Shown here piece after piece: positions 165 through 61,671 of a stretch of DNA of 64,000 nucleotides. The translations under genes and the position numbers were made by a program. Position 1 is the stretch's first letter; every line of letters begins with the position of its first letter. The notes below the pieces were generated by a model. It made no database searches. It saw nothing but the letters and a program-made list of their open reading frames with translations, and was not told the DNA's origin. The stretch covers positions 124,001 to 188,000 of the IMG/VR virus record IMGVR_UViG_3300027896_005002, one strand, 5' to 3'.

Positions 165-832
165 GTAAACTTTATTTTAATGTCGGCGATACAGTCCATG
201 TCAATGTCAGCACAATAATTAATAAACCAGAATTTGATGTTGTTATAACTAAAATAATTGTCCGTTATGGTAAATTTAATGGAGAAAGAGATAACCTAAT
301 CAAAGGCAAATTAATAATTCCATATAAATGTGAATGGACTCATAAATCTAAATATCCATGTTTTAACTGCAATAACACTGGAATGGTAACTGAAAAATCA
401 TTCTCCGAACACTACATAACTAACATCATCAAAAGATGTAATAAATCAATCAACACTATCAATAATATCTACACTGAACACGAACATCGCAATACGGTTT
501 ACTTAATGCATAAAATAGACACCGAACAAAAATCTGTATGGTGTGGTACATTATTTGATCTTATATCGAATGTATTGTCCAAATTACATAAGAATATCGA
601 TAGAGATATTGATTTATCTAAAGCACAAAATCTCTATATGAAAAATCATATTGGATTGATAAAATCTAATGATCATATTTTTTATGTTAATAAGAAAAGA
701 TTTTCAATGTGGGTAATTAAAAATATCGATAAATTACTTTATACAGTCAAACAAATGGATGATATGGCACTAGAAGAAGACAAACAAATAGAAGAAATAT
801 ACAATAACGACTTTGAATATGCAGAAAACTAA
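161..832 (+). CDS. hypothetical protein
   Basis: 223-aa ORF overlapping the upstream stop codon (ATGA). Confidence 0.6.
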   Translation: MSKLYFNVGDTVHVNVSTIINKPEFDVVITKIIVRYGKFNGERDNLIKGKLIIPYKCEWTHKSKYPCFNCNNTGMVTEKSFSEHYITNIIKRCNKSINTINNIYTEHEHRNTVYLMHKIDTEQKSVWCGTLFDLISNVLSKLHKNIDRDIDLSKAQNLYMKNHIGLIKSNDHIFYVNKKRFSMWVIKNIDKLLYTVKQMDDMALEEDKQIEEIYNNDFEYAEN

Positions 833-1055
833 TATTCTAGAAAGGCAAATAAATGAGCACACTCAAAATAGGCATCAAAGTCAAAAAACTAAAATTCTGG
901 GTCTGGTTCGACAAAACCAACACTAAAGAAGATGATACAAAATTCGAAGGTACTAACGGCTGGGGTGGTGAAACTAGCAACATCACTATTGCTAAATTAA
1001 ACGTACATCCTCGAGACATCGAAGGAAGAATCGAAGCTGACGGATACCTCTGCTA

Positions 1056-1574
1056 ATGAATTTTCACGACATTATCCAAACTATCGATGATTGGGTCGGC
1101 GGCGGACTCCAAGGCCAACATGATGACGGTGATCCCACTCCAGATGACAAACTCCTCTTCTACAACACAATCAACAACATACCAATTAAATACAAACATG
1201 GCGGAATTCTATATAGAGGAATTTCTCTACCAAAATCTACTAACCTCAATAACCTCAAAATCTCTGAACTAATCTCATCTTGGTCCAAATCGCTACAAAT
1301 CGCACAAGAACACGCACTAAAAAATCCATACACCACTCTCCACATCATCTTCAAAAAATCTATCCACTCAAATCATATTCTCATCAACATCGAAGACTTC
1401 TACAAAGACTTACCATCTCTCACTAACATCATCCCTCCCAACATCAAACTAAGAATCAACCACTCTACTCGAGAACAAGAAATCATCTGCAAAAACATAT
1501 CCCTCTCTATCAATAACATCTACCTCATACATCACCACAACCAATGGCTATCACTACCCCAATTAAATGGATAA
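1056..1574 (+). CDS. ADP-ribosyltransferase-fold protein (R-S-E class)
   Basis: Ordered motifs LYRG, SSWS..lqiA and REQEII match the R / SxS / ExE signature of R-S-E ARTs. Confidence 0.65.
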   Translation: MNFHDIIQTIDDWVGGGLQGQHDDGDPTPDDKLLFYNTINNIPIKYKHGGILYRGISLPKSTNLNNLKISELISSWSKSLQIAQEHALKNPYTTLHIIFKKSIHSNHILINIEDFYKDLPSLTNIIPPNIKLRINHSTREQEIICKNISLSINNIYLIHHHNQWLSLPQLNG

Positions 1575-1804
1575 AATTGCAGAAAATATTAAAAGGTTCG
1601 AGGTTCAACTGGCCTCACTCAAAAATCATTTGCTAAAAAAATTGGCATAAGCGCTACTCATTTAACCTCATTGAAAAGAAAAAGAAAAGACCATCTTTAA
1701 AACTTATTTGCAAAATATCTAACAAATTCAATATTGATCCAGCTTTTATTGTTACACATACAGATAACTTGCAACTTCTTAGGAATTTATTAAAAAATCG
1801 TTAA
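1567..1804 (+). pseudogene. XRE-family HTH regulator, apparently frameshifted twice (or sequencing error)
   Basis: Joining three frames gives MDKIAENIKR/RGSTGLTQKSFAKKIGISATHL/LIEKKKKRPSLKLICKISNKFNIDPAF...; both breaks are single-base losses in short homopolymers. Confidence 0.65.
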
Positions 1805-2062
1805 TACCTACATCAAGTCCTAATTCTTCATAAATAAATCTACTGCGGGCTCTTGCTGACATCAACTCTTTTCTATTTCTTTCTATAAATACAACCTACC
1901 TGTTTCTTATTTTTAAAGCTCAGTATACCACATGCGCGGGCCCGTGAACGAATCTTCACAACGACGTTAACTAGGCCCTCGCTGGCACCTAACAGTACCC
2001 CTTCGAGGATAACCCTGCGAATTCGCACGATTCTTAATTGTGGCGGTTACCATAACACCTCT

Positions 2063-2358
2063 GGGATCTCAGCATTAAGGCAACAGAGATCTCAAGTAAA
2101 GAGATCTCCTCCGAGATCTCATAGGTCTCGGATCTCAAGAATTCGAATCGATGTCGGCTCTGTCGAGTTGAGTTTTTGAGATCCGACTCAGTATAAAATT
2201 AGACTCAGTGCCATGAAGTAAACGGATTGGAGCTCTTAGTGTAGATAGAGTAGAGTGTAGAGAGCAGAGATAGCACGGTACGCTCTAGAGAGCTAGTGTA
2301 GAGGGATCTAGAGATCTCAGTAGAGCGTGATTTTTGGAGCTATATGGAGAAGGATCTC
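2063..2358. repeat. cluster of GAGATCTC/GGATCTC motifs in a non-coding convergence zone
   Basis: GATC at 2065, 2088, 2103, 2115, 2131, 2180, 2305, 2313, 2353; full palindrome GAGATCTC at 2086, 2101, 2113, 2311. Confidence 0.8.
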
Positions 2359-2490
2359 ACTCGAGAGAGTAGTGTGTAGAGTAGTGATATCGCGAGATAG
2401 AGCGTAGAGATAGAGTGCTTTCTGTTCGACTGCCACATTTAGGCGCTCGACAAAGAGGAGAAGATAGGGAATAAGTGAGTAGAGAAGATT

Positions 2491-2901
2491 TTAGTAGAGT
2501 TTGATGCCGGCTTTTTTGAAGTCCGATTTGAGGACGAAGACTGGGAATAATTCAGGTAGTAGTTGGTTGTTGGTATCGTAGGCTTTTGTGCCTTTTCTTT
2601 TTGATGGCCAACCGACTTTTGAGAAGTTTTTTTCAGTGTAGTTGCCAATGAATATTTCGTTTTTCTTTAATTCAGGATGATGTATCCTCTTTGAAGTTTT
2701 TATAATGATTCTATCGACAATAGCGCTAAGGAGACAAAGCAGAGGGCCAATGATGATGAGGAGTGAAAGAGGACGATATATGATGCTCGTTATTAGCCAG
2801 TGGTATATGATGCCTATTAGAGTGAGGAGAATACCGATTATAAAGATGATTGATGAAAAGAAGAAATCTATGATAATGAGAATTTTGTTTCTTGAGTTCA
2901 T
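2491..2901 (-). CDS. membrane protein (two predicted TM helices)
   Basis: Two long hydrophobic segments followed by a basic tail. Confidence 0.55.
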   Translation of the reverse strand: MNSRNKILIIIDFFFSSIIFIIGILLTLIGIIYHWLITSIIYRPLSLLIIIGPLLCLLSAIVDRIIIKTSKRIHHPELKKNEIFIGNYTEKNFSKVGWPSKRKGTKAYDTNNQLLPELFPVFVLKSDFKKAGIKLY

Positions 2902-4129
2902 AGTACCTCAGAAGTTCTCGAGATTTTTGAGAATTGTTTCTTCATCCATGTCATCCGGGAGTTCCATATAGTCTGGATTGCTTGGATGTAGATGAGAGCG
3001 AGCAATGTTTCGTTTGATACGTGCTATTGCGAATATGTTGTAATTTTCCATATTAGTATAATCATGAGATAGCGTAGAAATGGCCATTAATTTTTTTAGC
3101 AATGACAGAAGAATCGTTCGGGAGTTTCTTCACAGTACATTTTGAGGAAGAAGGTGCATTCTTTATGAATTTGGCAGGGTTTGTGTAATGATAGTGCTCT
3201 TTTGAGTATGTGTTCCATGAGTATGGAGAGTTCAGATCCTTTAAGATGTTTTGTGCTTTCTTCGACCTCTTCTACGCCACCATGAGCAGAAATTCTGAAT
3301 TGGTGATCACGCCATGTAAAGCGTATTGCATTTTTTTCTGTTGTGAAGTCGATGTCAGTGATTTGTTTTTGGAATGGTATGATATCCGGCGTTGTTAGAG
3401 TTTTTATAATGTCCGATTGTGAGTACATAGTGTTCCTTATAATGTTCCTTATAATAAGTCATTAGCTTTGAGATATGTATCGGTAATGAATTCCAGAGTG
3501 ACGTTGCCTTTGCTGTGATTGTATCCGAAGGCAATAGCGTCTCGAATAAGATCTGTTTTTTTAATGCGAAGTTGGTTACGGACTATTTCAGCATTGTTTA
3601 TAGCTTGTTGTAGTCGACCTTCGGCAATGTGACGGATGATTTCATCCATTAATGTGACTAATGTTGGTGTTGTCATGGATTGATTCCGGGGCGATTGCCA
3701 TAGGGTGCCGATTGGTTAGGGTGATTTACGTGACCGACGACACCAGCAATGGTTATGCCGAGGATAGTGAGGATGACAATGAGTACCATGAGTTCGATGA
3801 GAGTGAAGCCTTTACGTTTTTTCATGAGGACCTCCGATTGAGTAGGTATTTGTGAGTGAAAGCGATAATTTTTGATGGTGATCGAATTTCTACTGGGCCA
3901 TTTTTGGGTACTGTTTTTAAGTAAGCTTTTATAGTATCTGTTAGAGTAGGAAAATCTGGAGATTCTGTAGAATTTTCCATTTTGATGTCGTGTTTTTTGA
4001 GGAAAGATGCCATTGATTGGAGAGTGTCAGTTTCTACAATGAGAGCACATCGTTTGCCAGTACATATGACGGTAGCTTTAGGATAGCGAATGATTCCTTG
4101 TTTAGTCATTATTTATACCTTATAAATAC

Positions 4130-4811: not shown

Positions 4812-5126
4812 TTATTTCTTTTGAGAAGGTGTTGGTTTAAATTTGATTATTTTACCGTTTTTTTCTTCATAACATATAGGACCTCTTCCATCTTCACGGA
4901 CACCGAACATTCCATTGAGAATTCCAAGAAATCCGACTTTTGAAGCAATGTGTGGTTCATGATTATCGACTTGGATTGTTGGATGTCTCTCGAGGGCTTT
5001 GCGACAATTCTCTCTGTGTTTTATTAATTCATTAGCGCATACCGAATCGAGTTTTAAGATTTCATTTAGCAAGTCGCAGACATCTTTGACGGTAATACTT
5101 TTTTTAACGGTAATACTTTTTGCCAT
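4812..5126 (-). CDS. hypothetical protein, paralogue of 37557..37868
   Basis: Near-identical blocks RHPTIQVD.HEPHI.SKVGFLG.LNGMFGVR.DG.GPICYEEK.GKIIKFKPTPS. Confidence 0.8.
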   Translation of the reverse strand: MAKSITVKKSITVKDVCDLLNEILKLDSVCANELIKHRENCRKALERHPTIQVDNHEPHIASKVGFLGILNGMFGVREDGRGPICYEEKNGKIIKFKPTPSQKK

Positions 5127-5304
5127 AATTCACCTTTTCTATTTGCCGGAAAGCCAGCTGACAAAGACTATTGGACCTATGAATAATAGTACGATGATGA
5201 TGGTTGTTCTTATAGGATGTTTTTCAAAGTCCATAAATGTGCAATTATTTCCCTCAAAATGTGGCAGTCGAATTGTCTCTTTCTCTCTTGGCCGATGGAA
5301 GTGG

Positions 5305-7516: not shown

Positions 7517-7900
7517 TTATCCTTTTAGAACCTTTTTGTATTTTACAATTTTTAAAATTGGTTTGAAAAAGTTTGGTTTTTTAATGATAGAGCCTTCATG
7601 AGGCAATAATAAAGCCACTGCACTTTTATGCCGTTTTCCATGAAGATGAGATTCTGCATTTCCTTTTGGCATTGATATTTTACAAGTATCACAATAAAAT
7701 TCATGTTTGGGATCGTATAACGGTTCTTGCAGAGGTGGAAATACTTCATCATAAATTGTTTGAAATTCTGCCCGTTCATTTGCAGTGCATTCCATTTCCC
7801 AAGCATCAGCACCACAATAATCAATTATTCCTTTTGCGAGTTGTAAAGCTCTTTTGAGTTTTTCAAGTAAAGATTCTTTGATTTCGCCTTGGATATTCAT
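7517..7900 (-). CDS. protein with matrin/U1-type C2H2 zinc finger
   Basis: FYCDTCKISMPKGNAESHLHGKRHK. Confidence 0.55.
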   Translation of the reverse strand: MNIQGEIKESLLEKLKRALQLAKGIIDYCGADAWEMECTANERAEFQTIYDEVFPPLQEPLYDPKHEFYCDTCKISMPKGNAESHLHGKRHKSAVALLLPHEGSIIKKPNFFKPILKIVKYKKVLKG

Positions 7901-9036
7901 GCGTCCTCACTTTTATATTTTAATTGGGTCATTTTGCATTCACTTACATCAACGTCATCTCTTATTTCTTTGAAGCTTGGTTGGTATAAGCAACCGTTTC
8001 GATATGCGTAAAGGTATTTAATTTCGACGACTGATCCAATAGGTGGGTGCCGACTGCAACTGCAATAGCCGACAAATTCTCGATCACCAGCTCCATTGAA
8101 AAGTTCCATTCCTATTGAGGCTTTTCCAGTACGACCTTCAACGACGATGACTGAACATTCGGCATAAAATTTGAATTTGAATTGATCGAGACCTTTTCCG
8201 GGAGAGAAAATTGCTGACATTTTCTTGAAGACGATTCCTTCTTTTCCTTGGGCCTCGAGTTTGTTGTAAAAAGCGACTTTAGCTGCTTTGCCGACAATGA
8301 TGTCAAGGATTTTGATTTTGGGACCGAATCGTAATTGATTAAGAATATGATATCGTTGAAGATAAGGCAAAATGCGCAAATTCATTGTACCGAGTTCGAG
8401 GATGTCCCAAGTATAAAAAATGCCGTTGACTTGTTCACCATCGATGAGAATATTGGGATTGATATTACTTAGCGATGCTTTGAATTCCGAATCACATTCA
8501 CAACCGATTCCTTTTTTATTTCGAACAGTTAAAATACCGTTGGTCAAATGAAGAGAAAGATGCTTACCGTCCTTTTTTTCTTGAGCACAAAAATCATCGT
8601 CATCAAGCAATCGAGCAAGGTCATCTTCATCAGTTTCTGTAAGTAATTGAGGGATGAATCCAATGTCGATGTCATCGTCAGGTGCTTCCCTTCTTTCTGC
8701 AGCTTTTCTTCGATTTTCTCGAATTAATTTGAAAGCCTCGGTCGCTGTCCGGAATTTTACTGGATCGTTTTGGCCAGTTTGACTGTCTTGGTGACACTGT
8801 CTTACGATTTTGCGAAAGGCTGTTTTTACTTCATCCTCTGTTGCCGTTGGTGATACACCAATTACCGTGAAGGCTGATGTCGCAGTTAGATTTTTAGCAG
8901 AATCTGAATTTTTAAGAGCTTCACTAAAAATACCGGCCCATTGATTGGGATTTCCTTTTTCACCAGTATATGTACCGTATTTTGATGGTGATGACCAGAT
9001 AGAAGATTTTTTAGCCATTATCGAACTCCTCTGCAT
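7897..9036 (-). CDS. J-domain / ATP-dependent DNA ligase fusion (probable start 9018)
   Basis: J-like helix set AFTVIGVSPTATEDEVKTAFRKIVRQCHQD; ligase QEKKDG, IDGE, WDILE, EGIVFK; OB domain VVEIKYLYAY...LYQPSF...RDD. Confidence 0.8.
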   Translation of the reverse strand: MQRSSIMAKKSSIWSSPSKYGTYTGEKGNPNQWAGIFSEALKNSDSAKNLTATSAFTVIGVSPTATEDEVKTAFRKIVRQCHQDSQTGQNDPVKFRTATEAFKLIRENRRKAAERREAPDDDIDIGFIPQLLTETDEDDLARLLDDDDFCAQEKKDGKHLSLHLTNGILTVRNKKGIGCECDSEFKASLSNINPNILIDGEQVNGIFYTWDILELGTMNLRILPYLQRYHILNQLRFGPKIKILDIIVGKAAKVAFYNKLEAQGKEGIVFKKMSAIFSPGKGLDQFKFKFYAECSVIVVEGRTGKASIGMELFNGAGDREFVGYCSCSRHPPIGSVVEIKYLYAYRNGCLYQPSFKEIRDDVDVSECKMTQLKYKSEDA

Positions 9037-16410: not shown

Positions 16411-17466
16411 TTAGCGACCAGTTTTGTCAAGATAAATTGGGTCTCTCTGTTTCAAGAATAATCTGCCAAAACCAACAATATATCTTTCTATCATTGGCTT
16501 TATCACTATTCCCTCTCTCAATTTATCAATCATAAAACTTTGACTATGAGAAGCTTCAGGCAATGTCCGTCCATTCAACCAATCCTTTAATGAAATATAC
16601 GTCGAAATTATAGGCACCCATATTGCTCTCAAACCTGTTCGATCTAATATAGGTTGAAGTTCATTATAACCCAAAGGCCGACCATTTATATCTATATCAA
16701 ACAACCTTGTCGTAAACTTCTTTAAATTATAATGATTACCTTGCACTCCAGGCCCTATAAACTCACTCCTTATAGTCACTGCACAATTTGGATAAAATTC
16801 TGATTGTATTATTTGAGCGGCTACTATTAATCCTTCATTTTTTGCTACTTGCCAAAAAGAATGATCTTCATGATCTGGCAAATTAACTATTCCATGACCA
16901 TGTGTACAAACACTTATTGTCTCATCTATACCAACAAAAGTAGCCATATTGCTACCTTCAATCTTCTCTGTTATCCACACTAATTCATTCATCAATATGT
17001 CAACAATATCAATATGAGTCTCACAATTCTCAATATCATAATTATAAACCATCTCAGGTCTCTGAATCAAATTACCTGTACTTGTAATTATCTCTGGCGC
17101 TTCATATTTAGTAACTCCTATAGCTGCTGTCAAATCAGTTGGTAAAGTATCAGTTTTTAAATATGTTTTTACACTATCTATGGATGTAACTAGTCCTTGA
17201 CTTATTTCACCACGTAAGCGAACAGTTTTGATTCTATTTTGATCTTTTCCAGACAAAAAATTCTTGATATTTTGTTGTTGGATAAAACCTTCAGGTAATA
17301 AAGAATCTATAGGGAAATATATTATTTCGTCACCAGTTTTATATAGACCTTTGGGTATTACAAATTGATATGTCATATCCTCGACTTGACCTAATTCAAG
17401 TTTATCTGCATTTGGATGAGGATACACTTTCGACAATTTCTTTCTTTCAACAGCAAAGGTACTCAT
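16411..17466 (-). CDS. RNA ligase, DRB0094/Rnl5 family
   Basis: N-terminal OB with HPNADKLEL and RIKTVRLRGEISQGL; ITEKIEGSN; SEFIGPGVQGN.Y; FDI; REGIVIKP. Confidence 0.9.
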   Translation of the reverse strand: MSTFAVERKKLSKVYPHPNADKLELGQVEDMTYQFVIPKGLYKTGDEIIYFPIDSLLPEGFIQQQNIKNFLSGKDQNRIKTVRLRGEISQGLVTSIDSVKTYLKTDTLPTDLTAAIGVTKYEAPEIITSTGNLIQRPEMVYNYDIENCETHIDIVDILMNELVWITEKIEGSNMATFVGIDETISVCTHGHGIVNLPDHEDHSFWQVAKNEGLIVAAQIIQSEFYPNCAVTIRSEFIGPGVQGNHYNLKKFTTRLFDIDINGRPLGYNELQPILDRTGLRAIWVPIISTYISLKDWLNGRTLPEASHSQSFMIDKLREGIVIKPMIERYIVGFGRLFLKQRDPIYLDKTGR

Positions 17467-51690: not shown

Positions 51691-51729
51691 AAAAAAAAGG
51701 CCGTGAGAGAATACCCTTCGCTCACGGCT
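51691..51729 (-). terminator. intrinsic terminator closing the ncRNA cluster
   Basis: GCCGTGAG/CTCACGGC stem followed by T8 on the minus strand. Confidence 0.85.
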
Positions 51730-51776
51730 TTATTATTCTATTATTTGTATGAATTACAAGATAGAATGATGCTTTC

Positions 51777-51929
51777 TAATTACTTCGACATTTATCATTT
51801 AGCATAATGTCCCTGCTCTACCAACTGAGCTATCGACCCTCGTAGTATTCTTTTTTAAAAAAATACTGTGAGGGTCGAACTGGAATTGAACCAGTGACTG
51901 GAATAGTAATGACAAATTCTCCATAATTA
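51777..51929 (-). ncRNA. YrlA-like Y RNA with circularly permuted tRNA-like domain
   Basis: T arm ACTGG-TTCAATT-CCAGT and TCGACCC come BEFORE GGGTCGA-TA-GCTCAGTTGGTAGAGC (D arm); acceptor stem closed by a hairpin; flanks pair; GTCGAAG motif at 51789-51783. Confidence 0.8.
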
Positions 51930-51946
51930 TTGGCTTTTAGTATTAG

Positions 51947-52042
51947 TATGGAACGTTCACTCGCATAATTATGAATTAGGACCATCACAAGTGTCAAGTG
52001 AGCCCTAATAAGTATGAATATAAATATTATGATACGTTCATA
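51947..52042 (-). ncRNA. second Y-RNA-like structured RNA with bulged-C terminal stem
   Basis: TATGAACGT pairs ACGTT(C)CATA; CATAAT/ATTATG; inner TTAGGGCTCAC/GTGA..GTCCTAA hairpin. Confidence 0.5.
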
Positions 52043-52804
52043 TTATCCATTAATAAATTGAAAAATATATTTGCCAATATTGAGTGAATTATCAACAACA
52101 GTATCATTTGCTCTTGCTCTTGCTTTTTTCACGGCTGCAATCAAAATATCAATCCTCGAAAGGATATCACTTTTTTGTGCAGGTGAAAGTAATCCACTGA
52201 AATTTGTTTGTTTCCAATTACCGACAGGAACATCTTCATTAATAAGTTGAACCTGTGGAGGATGTTTGTCAGTTCCTGGATGTAAAGTAATAGGTTTTGC
52301 AATTTTATTTGTTCTGACCCTTGATGTCGGTTCGGTTTTAAATCGACCTTTTCCGGCTTCGGTATCAGGAAGCCATTTCTTTGCTGGATCCAATGTCGGA
52401 ATAACATCATAAATTTGTGTTCTTAAACTTTCCAATTGATTTTCAAGTTGTACTAATGCCTGAACCGGTACATTCTTAATTGTTAAGTCTTTGCCATCTT
52501 CGCCATTAATATTAATATCACCTTTTGCTTTTGTGTTGGCATCTTCTTTTTGTAAAATGATATCAAACAGTCTGGTCATCGATTTTTCAAAATATGTTAA
52601 TTTGTCGCCCACTGTTGTAATTGGAGTTGGTAATTCCTGTTCAGGAATATCTTTATCTGAATCTGCAAAGGGTTCATATAACTTCGCGTGTGTGCTGAAT
52701 AAGTGTGCCTTTTTTGTAAAAGTTTGATTGGTTTCAGCAATAATTTTACCTGCAGTTCCTCTGACATCTTTTTCTACCGCTACTAGCTCATGTAATTTTC
52801 CCAT
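52043..52804 (-). CDS. conserved hypothetical protein (DUF7873-like from memory)
   Basis: KLHELVAVEK, QKEDAN..AK.D, VP...L..LE.QL, R..K, T.KHP.QV....EDVPVG.W....FSG, RID.LI.AVKKAR.RAN. Confidence 0.7.
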   Translation of the reverse strand: MGKLHELVAVEKDVRGTAGKIIAETNQTFTKKAHLFSTHAKLYEPFADSDKDIPEQELPTPITTVGDKLTYFEKSMTRLFDIILQKEDANTKAKGDININGEDGKDLTIKNVPVQALVQLENQLESLRTQIYDVIPTLDPAKKWLPDTEAGKGRFKTEPTSRVRTNKIAKPITLHPGTDKHPPQVQLINEDVPVGNWKQTNFSGLLSPAQKSDILSRIDILIAAVKKARARANDTVVDNSLNIGKYIFQFING

Positions 52805-53826
52805 AAAACACTCCTGTTAAAATTTTGTTTATATATAATTTTCTGTTGTTGTAGTATTATTAACATGCCTTTTTTACTCCTTAATTTACGATAGTCAGAT
52901 CAATGAAAAAATATATAGCAAATAATATATTAAAATAATCATATTGTCAAAGTTTTATTGAAATTCGGGCTAAAATTACATCGAGAAATTTAATCGGTTT
53001 ACCTTATTACTATACAATCATATTTCTTGTGTAAAATTTTTAATAATCTCCTTATAACTTCGCTATTATTAAATAAAAAAAGAAAGGAAAGGAGGTCACT
53101 ATGAAAATGTTCTTTTTAATCTTATTAAGCATCTGTTTGTGTTACAGCAAAGAACATTATAGGGACACAACTTACATCCATGCGTTTAAGTTTATTGATG
53201 CTTTGGAAAACCAGAATCAACATAACTATAGAGGCTCTGGGTATTATGAGTACAGCTTTCATCCAATAAGTTTGTTTCCGTTGTTTTGCTTGCAGGATAA
53301 AGTTGTAGACAAGTTTATGTCCCAAAATCCTAAAGATGTAATATATTTAACAGATTTAATAAATTTCTATAGAACTATAGAAAAAAGTAGTGTGACATTT
53401 ACACGTTTGTATATTGGTGTCGTGCATTATATACAAATTGGTAGATCATATCCAGTAAAAAAATATTATACATTGTATACGTGCATGTCAACTGATAACA
53501 AATCGTGGTTCATAGATAAAACACCGCTGACGGTGACATTGATTTTGACAGATCGTTTCAAACATTTATATGGGTGTAAATAATATGAAACACATAACAT
53601 TTGCTCTTATGCTACTTTTATTTTGCGCGCCGTTGAATAAGACTTATGTTAATATTAAAGAAACAATTGATGAACAACTCGCAAAAGATAGATATAAAAT
53701 CTATACTGAAAGTGTAGAATCAGTGAGACCAAAATTATTAAATGACAGTATTGTAAAAGTTGATACAATAAAAAGCGTTACAGGCAGCAAATTCTATGTT
53801 TTAACGGTTAAAATGAAAAGTAAATA

Positions 53827-55010: not shown

Positions 55011-55373
55011 ATGAAAGTACTTATTGTTGAAGACCAAAAAGACACATCAGAATATTTATCGACATTACTACAGTCGTACGACATTATAGTGCATACATGC
55101 ACTAATTCACTACAGGCTTTAGAATTGGTATGTTCAAACCAATACAATTGGGCTATAATTGATCTTAATTTAGAAGGGTCAATACAAGGTGAAGAATTAA
55201 TTGAAGAATTAAAAAAATACCGACCCGAAATCAAAATGATTGTGTCAACTGGATTATTTCTTTCTAATGATCAAAAAAACAAATTCATTAAACTAGGAGT
55301 CAAAGCAGTTTTAGAAAAACCTTATCAAGAAGATGTCCTAATCAATCTTTTGTTCAACAAATTAATTAACTAA
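55011..55373 (+). CDS. stand-alone CheY-like response regulator receiver
   Basis: KVLIVED, IIDLNL (phospho-Asp), G, VSTG, LEKPY. Confidence 0.9.
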   Translation: MKVLIVEDQKDTSEYLSTLLQSYDIIVHTCTNSLQALELVCSNQYNWAIIDLNLEGSIQGEELIEELKKYRPEIKMIVSTGLFLSNDQKNKFIKLGVKAVLEKPYQEDVLINLLFNKLIN

Positions 55374-55830: not shown

Positions 55831-56133
55831 TTAATATCTTCTATCTTTATTGAAGTTCCGTTCTCGCGGCTCTCTGTTGAAGTTACGTTCTCGAGGTTCT
55901 CTTTCTCTTGCTTCGTTGACTACTAGCGGTCTACCATTAAAACTAAAACCATTGCGATCGGCAATTGCTTTCTCTCCATCTGCGACTTCAACAAAACCAA
56001 AACCTCGTGATCTCCCTGTGGCTTTGTCCATAATAACATTTGCAGATGTAGCACCATACGGTTCAAAACATTGTTTAAGTTCATCATCCGTTGTGCTGAA
56101 AGGGATGTTACCGACATAAAGCTTCTTACTCAC
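55831..56133 (-). CDS. RRM (RNP-1) RNA-binding protein (GTG start 56133)
   Basis: KLYVGNIPF (RNP2), RSRGFGFVE (RNP1), LVVNEAR; SD GGAGGG. Confidence 0.9.
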   Translation of the reverse strand: MSKKLYVGNIPFSTTDDELKQCFEPYGATSANVIMDKATGRSRGFGFVEVADGEKAIADRNGFSFNGRPLVVNEAREREPRERNFNREPRERNFNKDRRY

Positions 56134-56229
56134 AAAAACCCTCCTAAAATAAGTGATTAAATCATAAACGTAAACATGATTCTTTATATGCAGAAAAAAA
56201 GTAGAATTTAACAATTTAGCAGAAAAATT

Positions 56230-56712
56230 CTAAAGCTTAGTTTCTTTATAGTTCCTTTTAGTTAGTTTTCTATTTAATTTTTCTTCTAAAGAAGATTTAG
56301 CCTGCTCTAAACTCGGTGATTCATCTATAATAGCTATTTTTGTCGTATTTGGATATCCGATACGACCATAAGCGTTAGCAGCTGCATAAGTACCGTCATC
56401 CTTTTGCATTATCACAAAATAATGAAATTTGTTATTGGGTCCTTCTCGTTTTGTAATATACTTTCTGAAAATAGGATTTCCTGTAGATCCAATAGCTGCT
56501 CTAAGTTTATCTAAAGTATCACTAGATTGAGATCTTGAAGGATCATAAATTTTAAGACCACTAGTTTCAGATCTTTTGGGTGGTTTTCCTGTTACTTTCC
56601 TACGAGACTGTGGATGACGGTGTAAATATGCAATTTGCAAATCATAAGGAACATTCATCCATTGACGAGCTTCTTTAATAAATTCTAATAAAATTGCAGC
56701 TAAATGTTTCAT
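56230..56712 (-). CDS. WGR-domain protein with MKH leader
   Basis: NKFHYFVI, YGRIG, A...LEEKL..KL.K.Y. Confidence 0.7.
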   Translation of the reverse strand: MKHLAAILLEFIKEARQWMNVPYDLQIAYLHRHPQSRRKVTGKPPKRSETSGLKIYDPSRSQSSDTLDKLRAAIGSTGNPIFRKYITKREGPNNKFHYFVIMQKDDGTYAAANAYGRIGYPNTTKIAIIDESPSLEQAKSSLEEKLNRKLTKRNYKETKL

Positions 56713-58560: not shown

Positions 58561-59799
58561 ATGAATATGAATGATAGTACAAAAAAGAAAATAAAAGAAT
58601 CATTGAGATTAACAAAACTAAAACGTCAAACACAACGTTGTAAAAGTGTAGAGCTCAAAATAGATTATTCAAATCTTAACAAACAACAAAAAGAATTTCT
58701 CAAAATGTTTTTTGTTGAAGCTAAATGGTTATATAATTTTATTCTTTCACAAGATAATATTTTTAAACTTGATTACAAAATTTCTACTGTTGTCATTTTA
58801 AAAAACAAATGTCAAGTTAGAAAACAACTACGTTATTTATTAGCTAAAAACAAACAAGATATTTTAAATCTTATTCGACAAAACATTACTGCGCTTTCTA
58901 AATTGAAAAATAAAGGCTGTAAAGTAGGTAAATTAAAATTTAAATCTTCTTATAATTGTATTGGTCTGTCGCAATATGGTCATACACATAAAATAACTGG
59001 TAATAATCGAATAAAAATAAATGGTATTAAAAAACCTATAATAGTATATGGTTTAAATCAAGTAAAAAATAATTATGAAATAGCTAATGCTAAATTAATA
59101 CAGAAAGCATCTGGTTATTATATAAAGTTAGTTTGTTATGAACTTAAATCGCAATCTGAACGGAAAGGAGAAGATATAGGGATTGATTTTGGAATAAAGA
59201 ATAATTTTACATTATCTAATGGTAAAGTAATTAATGTTATATCTATTGAAGAAACAGAACGACTTAAATTGTTACAAAAGAAGATGCAAAGACAGCTTAA
59301 AAGTTCTAACAATAGATACAAAACAAAAACTAAAATTCAAAAAGAATATGAAAAAATAACAAATAGAAAGAATGACGCTGCAAATAAGATTATTAACTAT
59401 TTATTGACAAATTATAATAGAATTTACATACAGGATGAACAATTATCTGATTGGCAAAAAAATTATAAAAAAGTACAATACAATTGTTTAGGTAGAGTTA
59501 AATTTAAATTGAAACGATCAAATAATACTTTTGTAATCAATAAATATTGCGCTTCAACCAAATTATGTTATTGTTGTGGTAAAATAAATAAAATTAATTT
59601 GTCACAAAGAATTTATGAATGTAGTTGTGGGTTAAAAGAAGATAGAGATCTTAAAGCAGCAAAAACTATAAAATATTTAGGACAACAGCAGCAACAGTAT
59701 AATGTACCTATGGACTATAGGGATGTTAAGTTTGTGGAGAATATAACCTCTACGTTAACAATTGGTTCACCATTTGTTAATATAAGTTATATTCAATGA
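58561..59799 (+). mobile_element. tnpB: TnpB (IS200/IS605 OrfB) RNA-guided nuclease gene without tnpA
   Basis: GIDFGIK (RuvC-I), IQDE (RuvC-II region), STKLCYCCG...CSCG zinc finger, DRDLKAA (RuvC-III). Confidence 0.85.
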
Positions 59800-60519: not shown

Positions 60520-61671
60520 TTAACGAAAATCTTTATTCATAACATGCATAAAAATCGTAAGAATATCTATTCTATTTAAATAATTATCACAAATTTTCAC
60601 ACATAAATCAATAATCTTTTCAATCTTCGGACTTTTCTGCAATTTTGAACTCTTATACAAATCATCTAATTTAAGATCAACTTTTCTTGAATATTCTTCA
60701 ACCTCTTCAAACGGCATTGAACCATTTCTAATTTCTTTCAGTTCCTCTGCATCAATGTTTGTTCTATCAACATTTACTTTTCCAGTTTCCATGATTTCAA
60801 GAGCCATGCGACATAAACGAATCAGATGCATTGCATGCTTAGTGTCGTACCCAAATTTTGCTTCTAAATCAGCTCTTTTAACATTTCTTGTTTTCTTCCA
60901 GTCTACAAATCTTTCCCATTCTTTTGAAGCATGATAAAATAAAAGTTCCTTTTCTGCTTCTGCAAGATATTCTTCTTTTATATATGAAGGTCCTAATGCT
61001 CGTAAAGTATTGGCTTGAGATTTAACACCAACCTGTAAATACTCAATAGCCAATTTACGTTTATTTTCAATAATATATTTTGTAAACAATGGCATGATAT
61101 AATCGGAATAAACACCGTCCAATTCAGCTAAAAAATCTTCTTTACTATCTGCAATAAAAAAATCACCTATAGTAGAATATACAATAGCTTTTAATTGAGC
61201 TGTTGGAAAGGTTGATGTCGGTTTCAATCCAAAATCAACTCTTTCAGGTTTTTCTTTTGGTGGATCTAACAAAAATTTCCGATGTGTTTTAATACGTTCT
61301 AATTGTGCGATCGCATACCCTGCAAACGTATATCTACATTTTTTACTAACAAATAAATCTCTATTTTCTCGTAACAGGTCCCAATGTTTGGTTGTTCTGA
61401 TGATGCATCGTTCAGGCATCCAAAGTAAGTCCATCATATTTGGATTGTTGTCCGCGATTAGTGCAACAGCTTTTCTGATATCGTAAATAGTTTTGTCTTC
61501 GTCGGGATAATCAGAAAATTGTTCAAAACGTCTCATACTGTAGAAATATTCTTTTCCTGGAATCATGACACCGGCTTTATCAATGTCAGAAAAAGAATTA
61601 TTTGTGCCGTAGGCTTGTGATCCAACTACAGTTTCAAAAATAGTTCGTTTATCTACATATTTATGATCCAT
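60520..61671 (-). CDS. Pol-beta superfamily nucleotidyltransferase (RlaP/YcgL-like)
   Basis: GSQAYG....SDID, NPNMMDLL, GY...Q, YDTKHAMHLIRL. Confidence 0.85.
   Translation of the reverse strand: MDHKYVDKRTIFETVVGSQAYGTNNSFSDIDKAGVMIPGKEYFYSMRRFEQFSDYPDEDKTIYDIRKAVALIADNNPNMMDLLWMPERCIIRTTKHWDLLRENRDLFVSKKCRYTFAGYAIAQLERIKTHRKFLLDPPKEKPERVDFGLKPTSTFPTAQLKAIVYSTIGDFFIADSKEDFLAELDGVYSDYIMPLFTKYIIENKRKLAIEYLQVGVKSQANTLRALGPSYIKEEYLAEAEKELLFYHASKEWERFVDWKKTRNVKRADLEAKFGYDTKHAMHLIRLCRMALEIMETGKVNVDRTNIDAEELKEIRNGSMPFEEVEEYSRKVDLKLDDLYKSSKLQKSPKIEKIIDLCVKICDNYLNRIDILTIFMHVMNKDFR

Follow-up and report, generated by a model that had tools for sequence, protein, structure and literature searches.

Bacterial and phage Y RNAs that mimic transfer RNA (tRNA) are so far known only as partners of the Ro60 protein. 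A locus in a large phage contig raises the question of whether such an RNA can instead belong to another protein. The locus lies in a stretch of 64,000 nucleotides (nt) from IMG/VR record IMGVR_UViG_3300027896_005002 (positions 124,001 to 188,000 of that record), which was analysed as a whole and is referred to here as the window. It consists of a gene for a 253-aa protein of the DUF7873 family at 52043-52804 (-) and, 3' of it, a circularly permuted tRNA-like small RNA of the YrlA type at 51777-51929 (-), basal stems included. The sequence-only reading of this locus had proposed a candidate protein-non-coding RNA system, composed of a DUF7873-like gene and a Y-RNA array without adjacent Ro60. 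Our analysis showed that the DUF7873 gene and the RNA gene are near-obligately linked in phages.

Genetic linkage of DUF7873 and the RNA in phages

The 253-aa open reading frame (ORF) matched Pfam DUF7873 (PF25283) with an E-value of 2.8e-69 and 234 bits against a cut-off of 27; the match exceeds the curated gathering threshold and aligns residues 1-252 with profile positions 1-242 of 244, and the family name proposed at the outset is therefore right. Searches with tblastn identified DUF7873 in 75 reference phage records at 28-42% identity, including phages of Vibrio, Rhizobium, Gordonia, Arthrobacter and Rhodococcus, Klebsiella/Serratia jumbo phages, Ralstonia phage RSL1 and cyanophages. At the DNA level the window showed no similarity to known phages. 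The first four reference records inspected all contained an unannotated gap of 280-485 nt 3' of the DUF7873 gene, and the Rfam YrlA model gave sub-threshold matches of 32-37 bits in three of these four gaps, which belong to unrelated phages.

The loci were searched with two covariance models, R1 built from 4 RNAs and R2 refined from 63 non-redundant sequences. With R1, 79 of 83 loci gave a same-strand match that lay 92-627 nt beyond the stop codon, and R2 recovered the rest. A module was called where an R2 match formed at least 6 of the 7 acceptor base pairs on the covariance-model alignment. The module was present in 78 of 79 viral contigs, on the same strand and 106-717 nt (median 166) after the gene, the sole miss being a contig that ends 119 nt after DUF7873; it was also found in all 8 reference-phage loci fetched. 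All 7 acceptor pairs formed in 76 of the 78 viral-contig modules and 6 of 7 in the remaining two. This requirement matters because the junctions of ordinary tandem tRNA genes can reach 45 bits. In phage T4 and other arrays, such junctions formed only 0-5 of the 7 pairs, against 7 in true modules; a tandem-tRNA artefact was thereby rejected as the source of the matches, and the same check removed T4 rnaC plus rnaD as members.

Far from generally lacking a downstream Y-like RNA, DUF7873 homologues carried it in 86 of 86 evaluable phage loci, with the same strand, order and spacing at only about 35% protein identity. Neighbour clustering of 77 non-redundant phage loci found no third conserved gene, the next family occurring in 7 loci. 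Because the RNA is present in these 86 phage loci and in 28 loci from cellular contigs or metagenome-assembled genomes (MAGs), and no other neighbour is conserved, the pair behaves as a conserved two-part module. These results support the idea of a candidate protein-non-coding RNA system.

Genes for tRNA or transfer-messenger RNA (tmRNA) were found within 3 kb in 36 of 60 scanned viral loci, and tRNA arrays surround the module in phages of Rhizobium, Arthrobacter, Gordonia and Rhodococcus. In about 20 of the 60 loci, the permuted RNA is followed after 15-60 nt by what looks like an ordinary tRNA gene, and RNase P cleavage at this adjoining tRNA could define the 3' end of the permuted RNA. Such downstream tRNAs lie at 4036-4108 in locus L055, 4377-4448 in L052 and 4373-4444 in L069, and some tRNAs just after the module carry unusual A34 anticodons (att, atg). 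Phage tmRNA genes occur about 1.8 kb downstream of the module in L030 (5543-5899) and L078 (5505-5895). In Klebsiella phage vB_KpM_FBKp24 (L143), an annotated tRNA-Sup-TTA at 5018-5097 uses the T arm and the ACCA of a permuted module at 5054-5176, which forms 7 of 7 acceptor pairs and is accompanied by a second module at 4871-4931; the annotated suppressor tRNA is most likely a mis-call.

The 352 nt 3' of the DUF7873 stop codon in the window folded far better than shuffled sequences (z -5.66). On the minus strand, the stop codon is followed by a promoter-bearing hairpin, the RNA proper, a small hairpin and a terminator. The first hairpin (51955-52005 (-)) encloses a promoter-like site for the RNA, TTGACA-18-CATAAT at 51968-51997 (-), which a consensus scan recovered with 11 of 12 matches; the hairpin matched neither R1 nor R2 and is not a tRNA-like module. 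The small hairpin at 51732-51768 (-) and the intrinsic terminator at 51691-51731 (-), a GC-rich hairpin followed by T8, were, like the first hairpin, taken from the minimum-free-energy fold. Compared with the closest relative, L006, the terminator of the window shows covariation in its stem and conservation of its loop GGGTATTCTC; a segment of this loop complements the 3' side of the hairpin that extends the acceptor stem of the RNA. Another promoter-like site, TTGACA-17-TATTAT, lies 5' of the DUF7873 gene at 52922-52950 (-), again a pattern match at 11 of 12 positions. A repeated TTCMATRCTNAT motif was rejected as a phage promoter, since it gave one match only, no better than chance.

The sequence-only reading had described two structured RNAs that follow the gene without a gap, share one terminator and form an apparent single transcription unit. 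The terminator was found, and the two RNAs proved to be one tRNA-like module and the promoter-bearing hairpin. About 115 nt separate the stop codon from the basal stem of the RNA, so that "no gap" was inexact. With an internal promoter-like site and no terminator between gene and RNA in the minimum-free-energy fold, a single transcription unit is possible, not established.

This layout bears on the explanation that the linkage is non-functional, the RNA being either a cis-acting 3' element that defines or protects the end of the mRNA or a chance neighbour in tRNA islands. It would suit the missing terminator and the tRNA and tmRNA genes that surround many modules, and tRNA-like structures are natural RNase P processing signals. 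We nevertheless consider it very improbable. Strand, order and spacing are kept across all the evaluable phage loci despite the low protein identity, and the pairing is kept in the 24 of 60 loci without tRNA genes as well as in chromosomal contexts. The window RNA has a promoter-like site of its own, and for FBKp24 the authors of the genome placed a promoter in the corresponding position. Finally, the full set of nucleotides that mark tRNA tertiary structure is conserved, which is more than an mRNA end element needs.

Structure of the permuted tRNA-like RNA

The window RNA was delimited by R2, R1, the Rfam YrlA model and its fold. Its core at 51789-51911 scored 78.4 bits with R2 (E about 1e-25); R1 gave 124.5 bits, the window being itself an R1 seed. 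A permissive scan with Rfam YrlA (RF02553) returned 35.6 bits (E 7e-6) at 51789-51915, which missed the gathering score of 69. Rfam at gathering thresholds reported nothing in the window, and ARAGORN found no tRNA or tmRNA anywhere in it.

From 5' to 3', the RNA comprises basal stems, a helix like an anticodon stem, a variable loop, the T arm, the acceptor stem, U8-A9, the D arm and the stem again. Two basal helices with internal loops pair 51923-51929 with 51777-51783 and 51908-51919 with 51787-51799. In the anticodon-stem position, a short helix of 4-5 bp pairs TTCC at 51900-51903 with GGGA at 51810-51813, and a variable loop of 4 nt leads to the T arm (51879-51895 (-)), which has a 5-bp stem and the loop TTCAATT. 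The acceptor-like stem with its closing hairpin occupies 51833-51878 (-); it forms 7 of 7 pairs between 51872-51878 and 51833-51839, is closed by a 32-nt extension hairpin (51840-51871) and has no CCA at its end. The D arm, GCTC AGTTGGTA GAGC, lies at 51815-51830 (-) with U8 and A9 just before it; both arms were placed by the Rfam YrlA alignment and the fold. Four elements share the segment 51783-51813 (-), namely the 3' side of the anticodon-stem-like helix, a stretch resembling a loop, one strand of the basal stem and, at 51783-51789, the motif GTCGAAG.

No contiguous cloverleaf was recognised by RF00005 or ARAGORN; the arms are permuted and an anticodon hairpin is missing. The RNA has instead the parts of a YrlA-type domain, namely a permuted T arm, an acceptor-like stem-loop and a D arm, carried on a stem made of the 5' and 3' ends. 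The window RNA thus follows the YrlA design, a cloverleaf with its ends relocated to the anticodon side. The Y-RNA part of the proposal stands in the sense that a YrlA-like tRNA mimic lies downstream of the gene; the "array" part does not, as the window holds a single module. A second permuted module was found in tandem, at most 1 kb downstream, in at least ten further loci (L002, L004, L017, L026, L084, L122, L137, L143, L145 and L146), and an array is therefore true of relatives, not of the window.

Covariation was computed on an alignment of 63 non-redundant RNAs, and it backs all four helices. Paired cells amounted to 94.7%, compared with 61.9% in column shuffles and 37-48% when the partners were slid, and compensatory double changes occurred at 19 of 20 pairs. 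The covariation score was 0.843, a value reached by none of 500 shuffles, versus 0.21. For the acceptor helix, 99.3% of cells were paired and each of the 7 pairs showed compensatory changes; for the T arm and D arm helices the share was 99.0% and 97.2%, respectively, and for the anticodon-like stem, where the alignment register is less certain, 78.6%. An N-CCA is encoded directly after the 7-nt acceptor strand in 53 of the 63 RNAs (84%), and the first C (C74) shows no variation among the 63. An A/U-rich linker of median length 11 nt, often with UAU at its end, leads back to the acceptor 5' strand. U8-A9 occurs in 52 of 63. The variable loop, T loop and D loop are tRNA-standard. G:U never occurs at the 3:70 pair, and the discriminator base varies. 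The window RNA and nine other members have a closed acceptor hairpin without CCA.

These features raise the alternative that the RNA is a permuted pre-tRNA or split tRNA, which DUF7873 would process, as an endonuclease or ligase, into a functional or chargeable tRNA-like molecule. The encoded N-CCA with its invariant C74, the U8-A9 and the standard loops are what such a precursor would show. After the anticodon-like stem comes a stretch that often looks like an anticodon loop, the module lies in tRNA islands, often directly 5' of a tRNA, and the conserved polar residues of DUF7873 could form an active site. However, the anticodon loop is not conserved: a strict reading of the 3' stretch as such a loop was rejected, with U33 in only 39 of 66 RNAs and a purine at position 37 in only 44 of 66. 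The lack of G3:U70, the variable discriminator base and the CCA-less closed hairpins also argue against this alternative, and no known nuclease or ligase fold resembles DUF7873. We regard this explanation as improbable.

Permuted tRNA-like molecules with other partners offer a further comparison. The two-piece, circularly permuted tmRNA that works with SmpB, reportedly described by Keiler, Shapiro and Williams in 2000, shares the order of T arm, acceptor 3' strand, CCA, intervening segment and acceptor 5' strand, and it likewise has a dedicated small protein partner for its tRNA-like domain. The RSL1 copy of our RNA gave weak beta_tmRNA matches over exactly the permuted part. Unlike two-piece tmRNA, the DUF7873-linked RNAs have no tag region, no pseudoknots and no G3:U70 and are only about 150 nt long, and DUF7873 has no detectable similarity to SmpB. 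In the permuted tRNA genes of Cyanidioschyzon merolae, which Soma et al. are said to have described in 2007, the tRNA 3' half also precedes the 5' half, the two are joined by an anticodon-side stem, and a spacer that would be cut out by RNase P and RNase Z connects the acceptor ends. Real tRNAs arise from those genes by way of a circular intermediate, which the splicing endonuclease and a ligase produce, whereas the DUF7873-linked RNA has neither a conserved anticodon loop nor such enzymes linked to it.

Relation to Ro60 and its Y RNAs

No TROVE/Ro60 gene was detected in the 64-kb window by tblastn with 8 diverse Ro60 queries (best E 2.0), no ORF had a fitting size or fitting domains, and none of the ten largest window ORFs scanned carried a TROVE or vWA_Ro60 domain, which bears out the earlier remark that the window holds no TROVE protein. 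The wording "without adjacent Ro60" holds for the family as well, as Ro60 was found in the flanks of only two of more than 140 DUF7873 loci (L001 and L050). A whole-genome TROVE tblastn returned 87 phage records, and a clear overlap with the DUF7873 set was seen only in Rhizobium Kleczkowskaviridae. Vibrio phages with DUF7873 are 78 kb in size, compared with 191-195 kb for Vibrio phages with TROVE; the Klebsiella/Serratia jumbo phages are not in the TROVE set by name counts, and the Gordonia groups and RSL1 had no TROVE record among the matches listed (60 of 87). Judged from these searches, most DUF7873 phages appear to be without Ro60.

Two observations, in L050 and in Rhizobium phage RHph_Y65, nevertheless connect the module with Ro60. 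L050 (IMGVR_UViG_3300017963_000201) encodes a 534-aa Ro60 homologue (vWA_Ro60, E 4e-23) that overlaps DUF7873 by 11 nt. Its layout over 469-3964 is an RNA (469-563), an ORF, Ro60 (1404-3008), DUF7873 (2998-3759) and a further RNA (3865-3964); the first RNA is YrlA-like with a closed acceptor, and the last is permuted, tRNA-like and of the ACCA type. Rhizobium phages encode DUF7873 and Ro60 within 6 kb, and in RHph_Y65 Ro60 lies 5.4 kb downstream of DUF7873 and is preceded by three modules of its own. Arthrobacter phage Atuin (L153) has a Ro-like gene and three permuted modules (7851-8253) with no DUF7873 in a 13-kb locus, and phage Mimi (L002) has DUF7873 and two modules with no Ro-like gene in a similarly organised tRNA island; the two islands look like alternative cassettes.

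The stems of the RNAs were also compared. The 5' motif [AGU]U[UC]ACUU[UC] was present in 7 of 11 Ro60-linked modules, which came from four phages, and in 0 of 66 DUF7873-linked RNAs (Fisher p 1.4e-7, for a motif picked after seeing the sequences). GNCGAAN0-1G, the motif published as the binding site of Ro60, was not enriched on the 5' strand of DUF7873-linked RNAs (3 of 66 versus 1.4 by chance). The window RNA lacks it on its 5' strand and carries GTCGAAG on the 3' strand, and the 3' flanks of DUF7873-linked RNAs show an excess of the motif YGAARR (18 of 66 versus 7.5 by chance). With the Ro60-linked motif missing and GNCGAAN0-1G not enriched, the tRNA-like core is shared and the stem differs according to the neighbouring protein. 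As far as sequence can tell, this difference would fit the prediction of partner-specific recognition.

The strongest competing account holds that the RNA is an ordinary Y RNA for a Ro60 of the phage or the host, with DUF7873 as an accessory or adaptor of the Ro60/Y-RNA/exonuclease machinery. The operon of L050, with its overlapping genes, and the proximity of both genes in Rhizobium phages point this way, as do the GTCGAAG in the basal stem of the window RNA and the enrichment of YGAARR; phage Ro60-Yrl complexes that recruit host PNPase are also documented (PMC12135203). Against it stand the rarity of Ro60 near DUF7873, the DUF7873-bearing Klebsiella/Serratia jumbo phages and 78-kb Vibrio phages that lie outside the TROVE results, the stem motifs of the DUF7873-linked RNAs described above, and RHph_Y65, in which each protein has its own adjoining RNA or RNAs. 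We judge this account unlikely. The hijacking of host Ro60/PNPase that the sequence-only reading had suggested is likewise conjectural.

The DUF7873-linked RNAs resemble the YrlA-type Y RNAs of Ro60/Rsr (Rfam RF02553; Chen et al. 2014, PMC4201824) in that a stem with internal loops carries a permuted T arm, a closed acceptor-like stem and a D arm, that the RNA is encoded beside the protein gene, and that both systems occur in phages. They differ in their neighbour, a protein of about 250 aa rather than a 500-aa TROVE/vWA ring, in a Rfam score that is half the family threshold, in the missing GNCGAA on the 5' strand, and, for most members, in the N-CCA encoded after a 7-bp acceptor stem. In Mycobacterium smegmatis, RNase P cuts YrlA, an RNA with a 7-bp acceptor stem, both in vivo and in vitro; this YrlA gains CCA and becomes a two-piece RNA (PMC4201824). 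That RNA is bound by Rsr, is encoded beside rsr and receives its CCA after transcription, whereas CCA is genomic in 84% of the DUF7873-linked RNAs and absent from the window RNA. Phage Ro60-Yrl ribonucleoproteins (RNPs) are represented by Thermus phage phiLo (PMC12135203) and Bas63 gp130 (PMC11482910), for which roles in manipulating host RNA decay or countering defence have been proposed. These too consist of a phage protein with an adjoining Y-like RNA in or near tRNA genes, but they are Ro60 homologues with CGAA-motif RNAs, and DUF7873 is unrelated to them in sequence and predicted fold. The DUF7873-linked RNA appears to be a subclass of YrlA-like tRNA mimics whose pairing with DUF7873 is undescribed: our literature search found no paper naming DUF7873, and in the literature on phage Y RNAs and permuted tRNAs it found Ro60-linked systems only.

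The DUF7873 protein and a proposed particle

An AlphaFold2 model of the window protein, made from a 50-sequence alignment, had a predicted local distance difference test (pLDDT) score of 91.8 and a predicted template modelling (pTM) score of 0.67. It predicts long helices at residues 4-31, 65-92, 114-132, 208-233 and 244-252, a beta hairpin at 94-113 and a beta region at 144-199, mainly a long hairpin at 160-199, in agreement with the earlier description of a mostly helical protein with a long beta insert. Foldseek searches of the PDB and BFVD with this model gave no structural relative at E <= 0.001. Sequence and profile searches of the PDB gave no match, NCBIfam and PADLOC searches were empty, PHROGs gave nothing informative, and the ESM Atlas returned the protein's own family only. 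A profile search placed 2565 clusters at 50% identity in the family. The best 150 of these measured 196-273 aa, nearly all 244-273; they align over almost their whole length, and there are therefore no domain fusions among them. Invariant or near-invariant polar residues are H5, E6, D81, N90, D139, H181, D191, K211 and N233, and local basic patches lie at residues 141-180 and 221-233.

We favour, with some reserve, the explanation that DUF7873 binds the stem and internal loop of its RNA to form a Ro60-independent RNP whose tRNA-like domain engages tRNA-handling factors. The DUF7873 gene and its cognate small RNA gene would constitute an autonomous two-part module, mainly of large phages, in which the protein would hold the non-tRNA part of the RNA. 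The resulting RNP would be analogous to Ro60-YrlA, and during infection its tRNA-like domain may engage tRNA-targeting defences or host factors such as RNase P, the CCA-adding enzyme, exoribonucleases or repair ligases. RNase P probably cleaves those members that combine a 7-bp acceptor stem with N-CCA, leaving a two-piece RNA; the RNase P cleavage of the M. smegmatis YrlA, with its 7-bp acceptor stem, makes them plausible substrates. We see an even balance of chances that the pair represents an unrecognised class of Ro60-independent RNPs in large phages and some bacteria, acting on the host tRNA or RNA-decay machinery, with DUF7873 as a second protein, of unrelated structure, that carries a tRNA-mimic RNA.

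Several observations weigh against this explanation. The contact between DUF7873 and the RNA is itself one that we infer, and the family is not globally basic (median isoelectric point 6.7). Given the internal promoter-like site, gene and RNA need not be co-expressed; given the missing CCA, two-piece processing may not apply to the window member. The window is 64 kb of a 416-kb contig, and a Ro60 gene elsewhere in the phage is possible. The cellular homologues bear on the explanation as well. A search of one-genome-per-species contigs found 57 loci. In 28 cellular or MAG loci a downstream module with 7 of 7 acceptor pairs was present, and two MAG loci (L091 and L096) gave weaker matches with only 3-5 of 7 pairs. 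In L107 the DUF7873-RNA pair stands alone among unrelated chromosomal genes. In contrast, 20 Bacteroidota chromosomal loci with an intact DUF7873 gene and sufficient flanking sequence had no module within 5 kb. These loci belong to Cytophagales, Microscillaceae or Saprospiraceae, and one is a complete Bernardetia chromosome; their downstream gaps are mostly under 170 nt and their neighbours are unrelated housekeeping genes. In a maximum-likelihood tree, all RNA-less genes fell in a single Bacteroidota clade (Shimodaira-Hasegawa-like approximate likelihood ratio test support 99), within which RNA-positive and RNA-negative genes are interleaved with at least 5 changes, and all other branches are RNA-positive. 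The RNA-less chromosomal genes show that DUF7873 can persist without a linked RNA. A terminator directly follows the stand-alone DUF7873 gene in L113, L111 and about 18 other Bacteroidota loci, and in Bernardetia a DDE transposase lies immediately 3' of it.

The occurrence of a mobile two-gene unit in phages and chromosomes could also point to a role in conflict, in which the RNA is a tRNA decoy against defence nucleases or toxins, or the pair resembles a toxin with an RNA antitoxin; the RNA would be stabilised or delivered by DUF7873, or would itself neutralise DUF7873. The location in phage tRNA islands, which are commonly seen as counter-defence, and the RNA ligase and RlaP among the RNA-repair genes of the window agree with this, and in Bas63 a Ro60-like protein of the phage acts against a defence system (PMC11482910). 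DUF7873, however, had no PADLOC match, the RNA lacks the anticodon loop that is the usual target of anticodon nucleases, and the RNA-less chromosomal genes speak against a toxin that needs an RNA antidote. In type III toxin-antitoxin systems, tandem RNA repeats lie upstream of an endoribonuclease toxin gene with a terminator between them. The DUF7873-linked RNA, unlike these, lies downstream and is a single structured module free of repeats. We hold a role of this kind to be quite unlikely, and continue to prefer a Ro60-independent RNP.

The surroundings of the pair in the window include several genes of RNA metabolism. RNA-repair-type genes on the minus strand encode an RNA ligase with a PHA02142 OB domain (16411-17466), the RNA-ligase-associated Pol-beta nucleotidyltransferase RlaP (60520-61671) and a fusion of DnaJ with an ATP-dependent ligase (7897-9036). 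The RNA ligase, RlaP, an RRM protein and other RNA-related genes lie 3-35 kb from the DUF7873-RNA pair. Within 2-7 kb of it are this RRM-domain RNA-binding protein (55831-56214 (-)), a WGR-domain protein (56230-56712 (-)), a stand-alone response-regulator receiver (55011-55373 (+)) and a TnpB/OrfB_IS605-like gene (58561-59799 (+)). An 821-aa ORF at 30234-32699 (-) contains a Pfam Vault_3 repeat and MVP_shoulder, and is a major-vault-protein-like gene in this 416-kb phage contig.

The pairing of DUF7873 with the RNA spans phages of Pseudomonadota, Actinomycetota and Cyanobacteria and probably of Bacteroidota, and it gives a large domain family of unknown function a testable role. It accounts for a recurrent unannotated gap of 300-500 nt in many reference phage genomes, among them RSL1, FBKp24-like Klebsiella jumbo phages and the SEA-PHAGES Gordonia, Arthrobacter and Rhodococcus phages. 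It also opens up tractable model systems and puts right the annotation of at least one supposed suppressor tRNA. That another, unrelated protein family is tied to the same kind of RNA offers an independent handle on the purpose of the tRNA-like domain. The N-CCA carried by the majority of these RNAs raises the possibility that phages make two-piece, possibly chargeable, tRNA-like RNAs.

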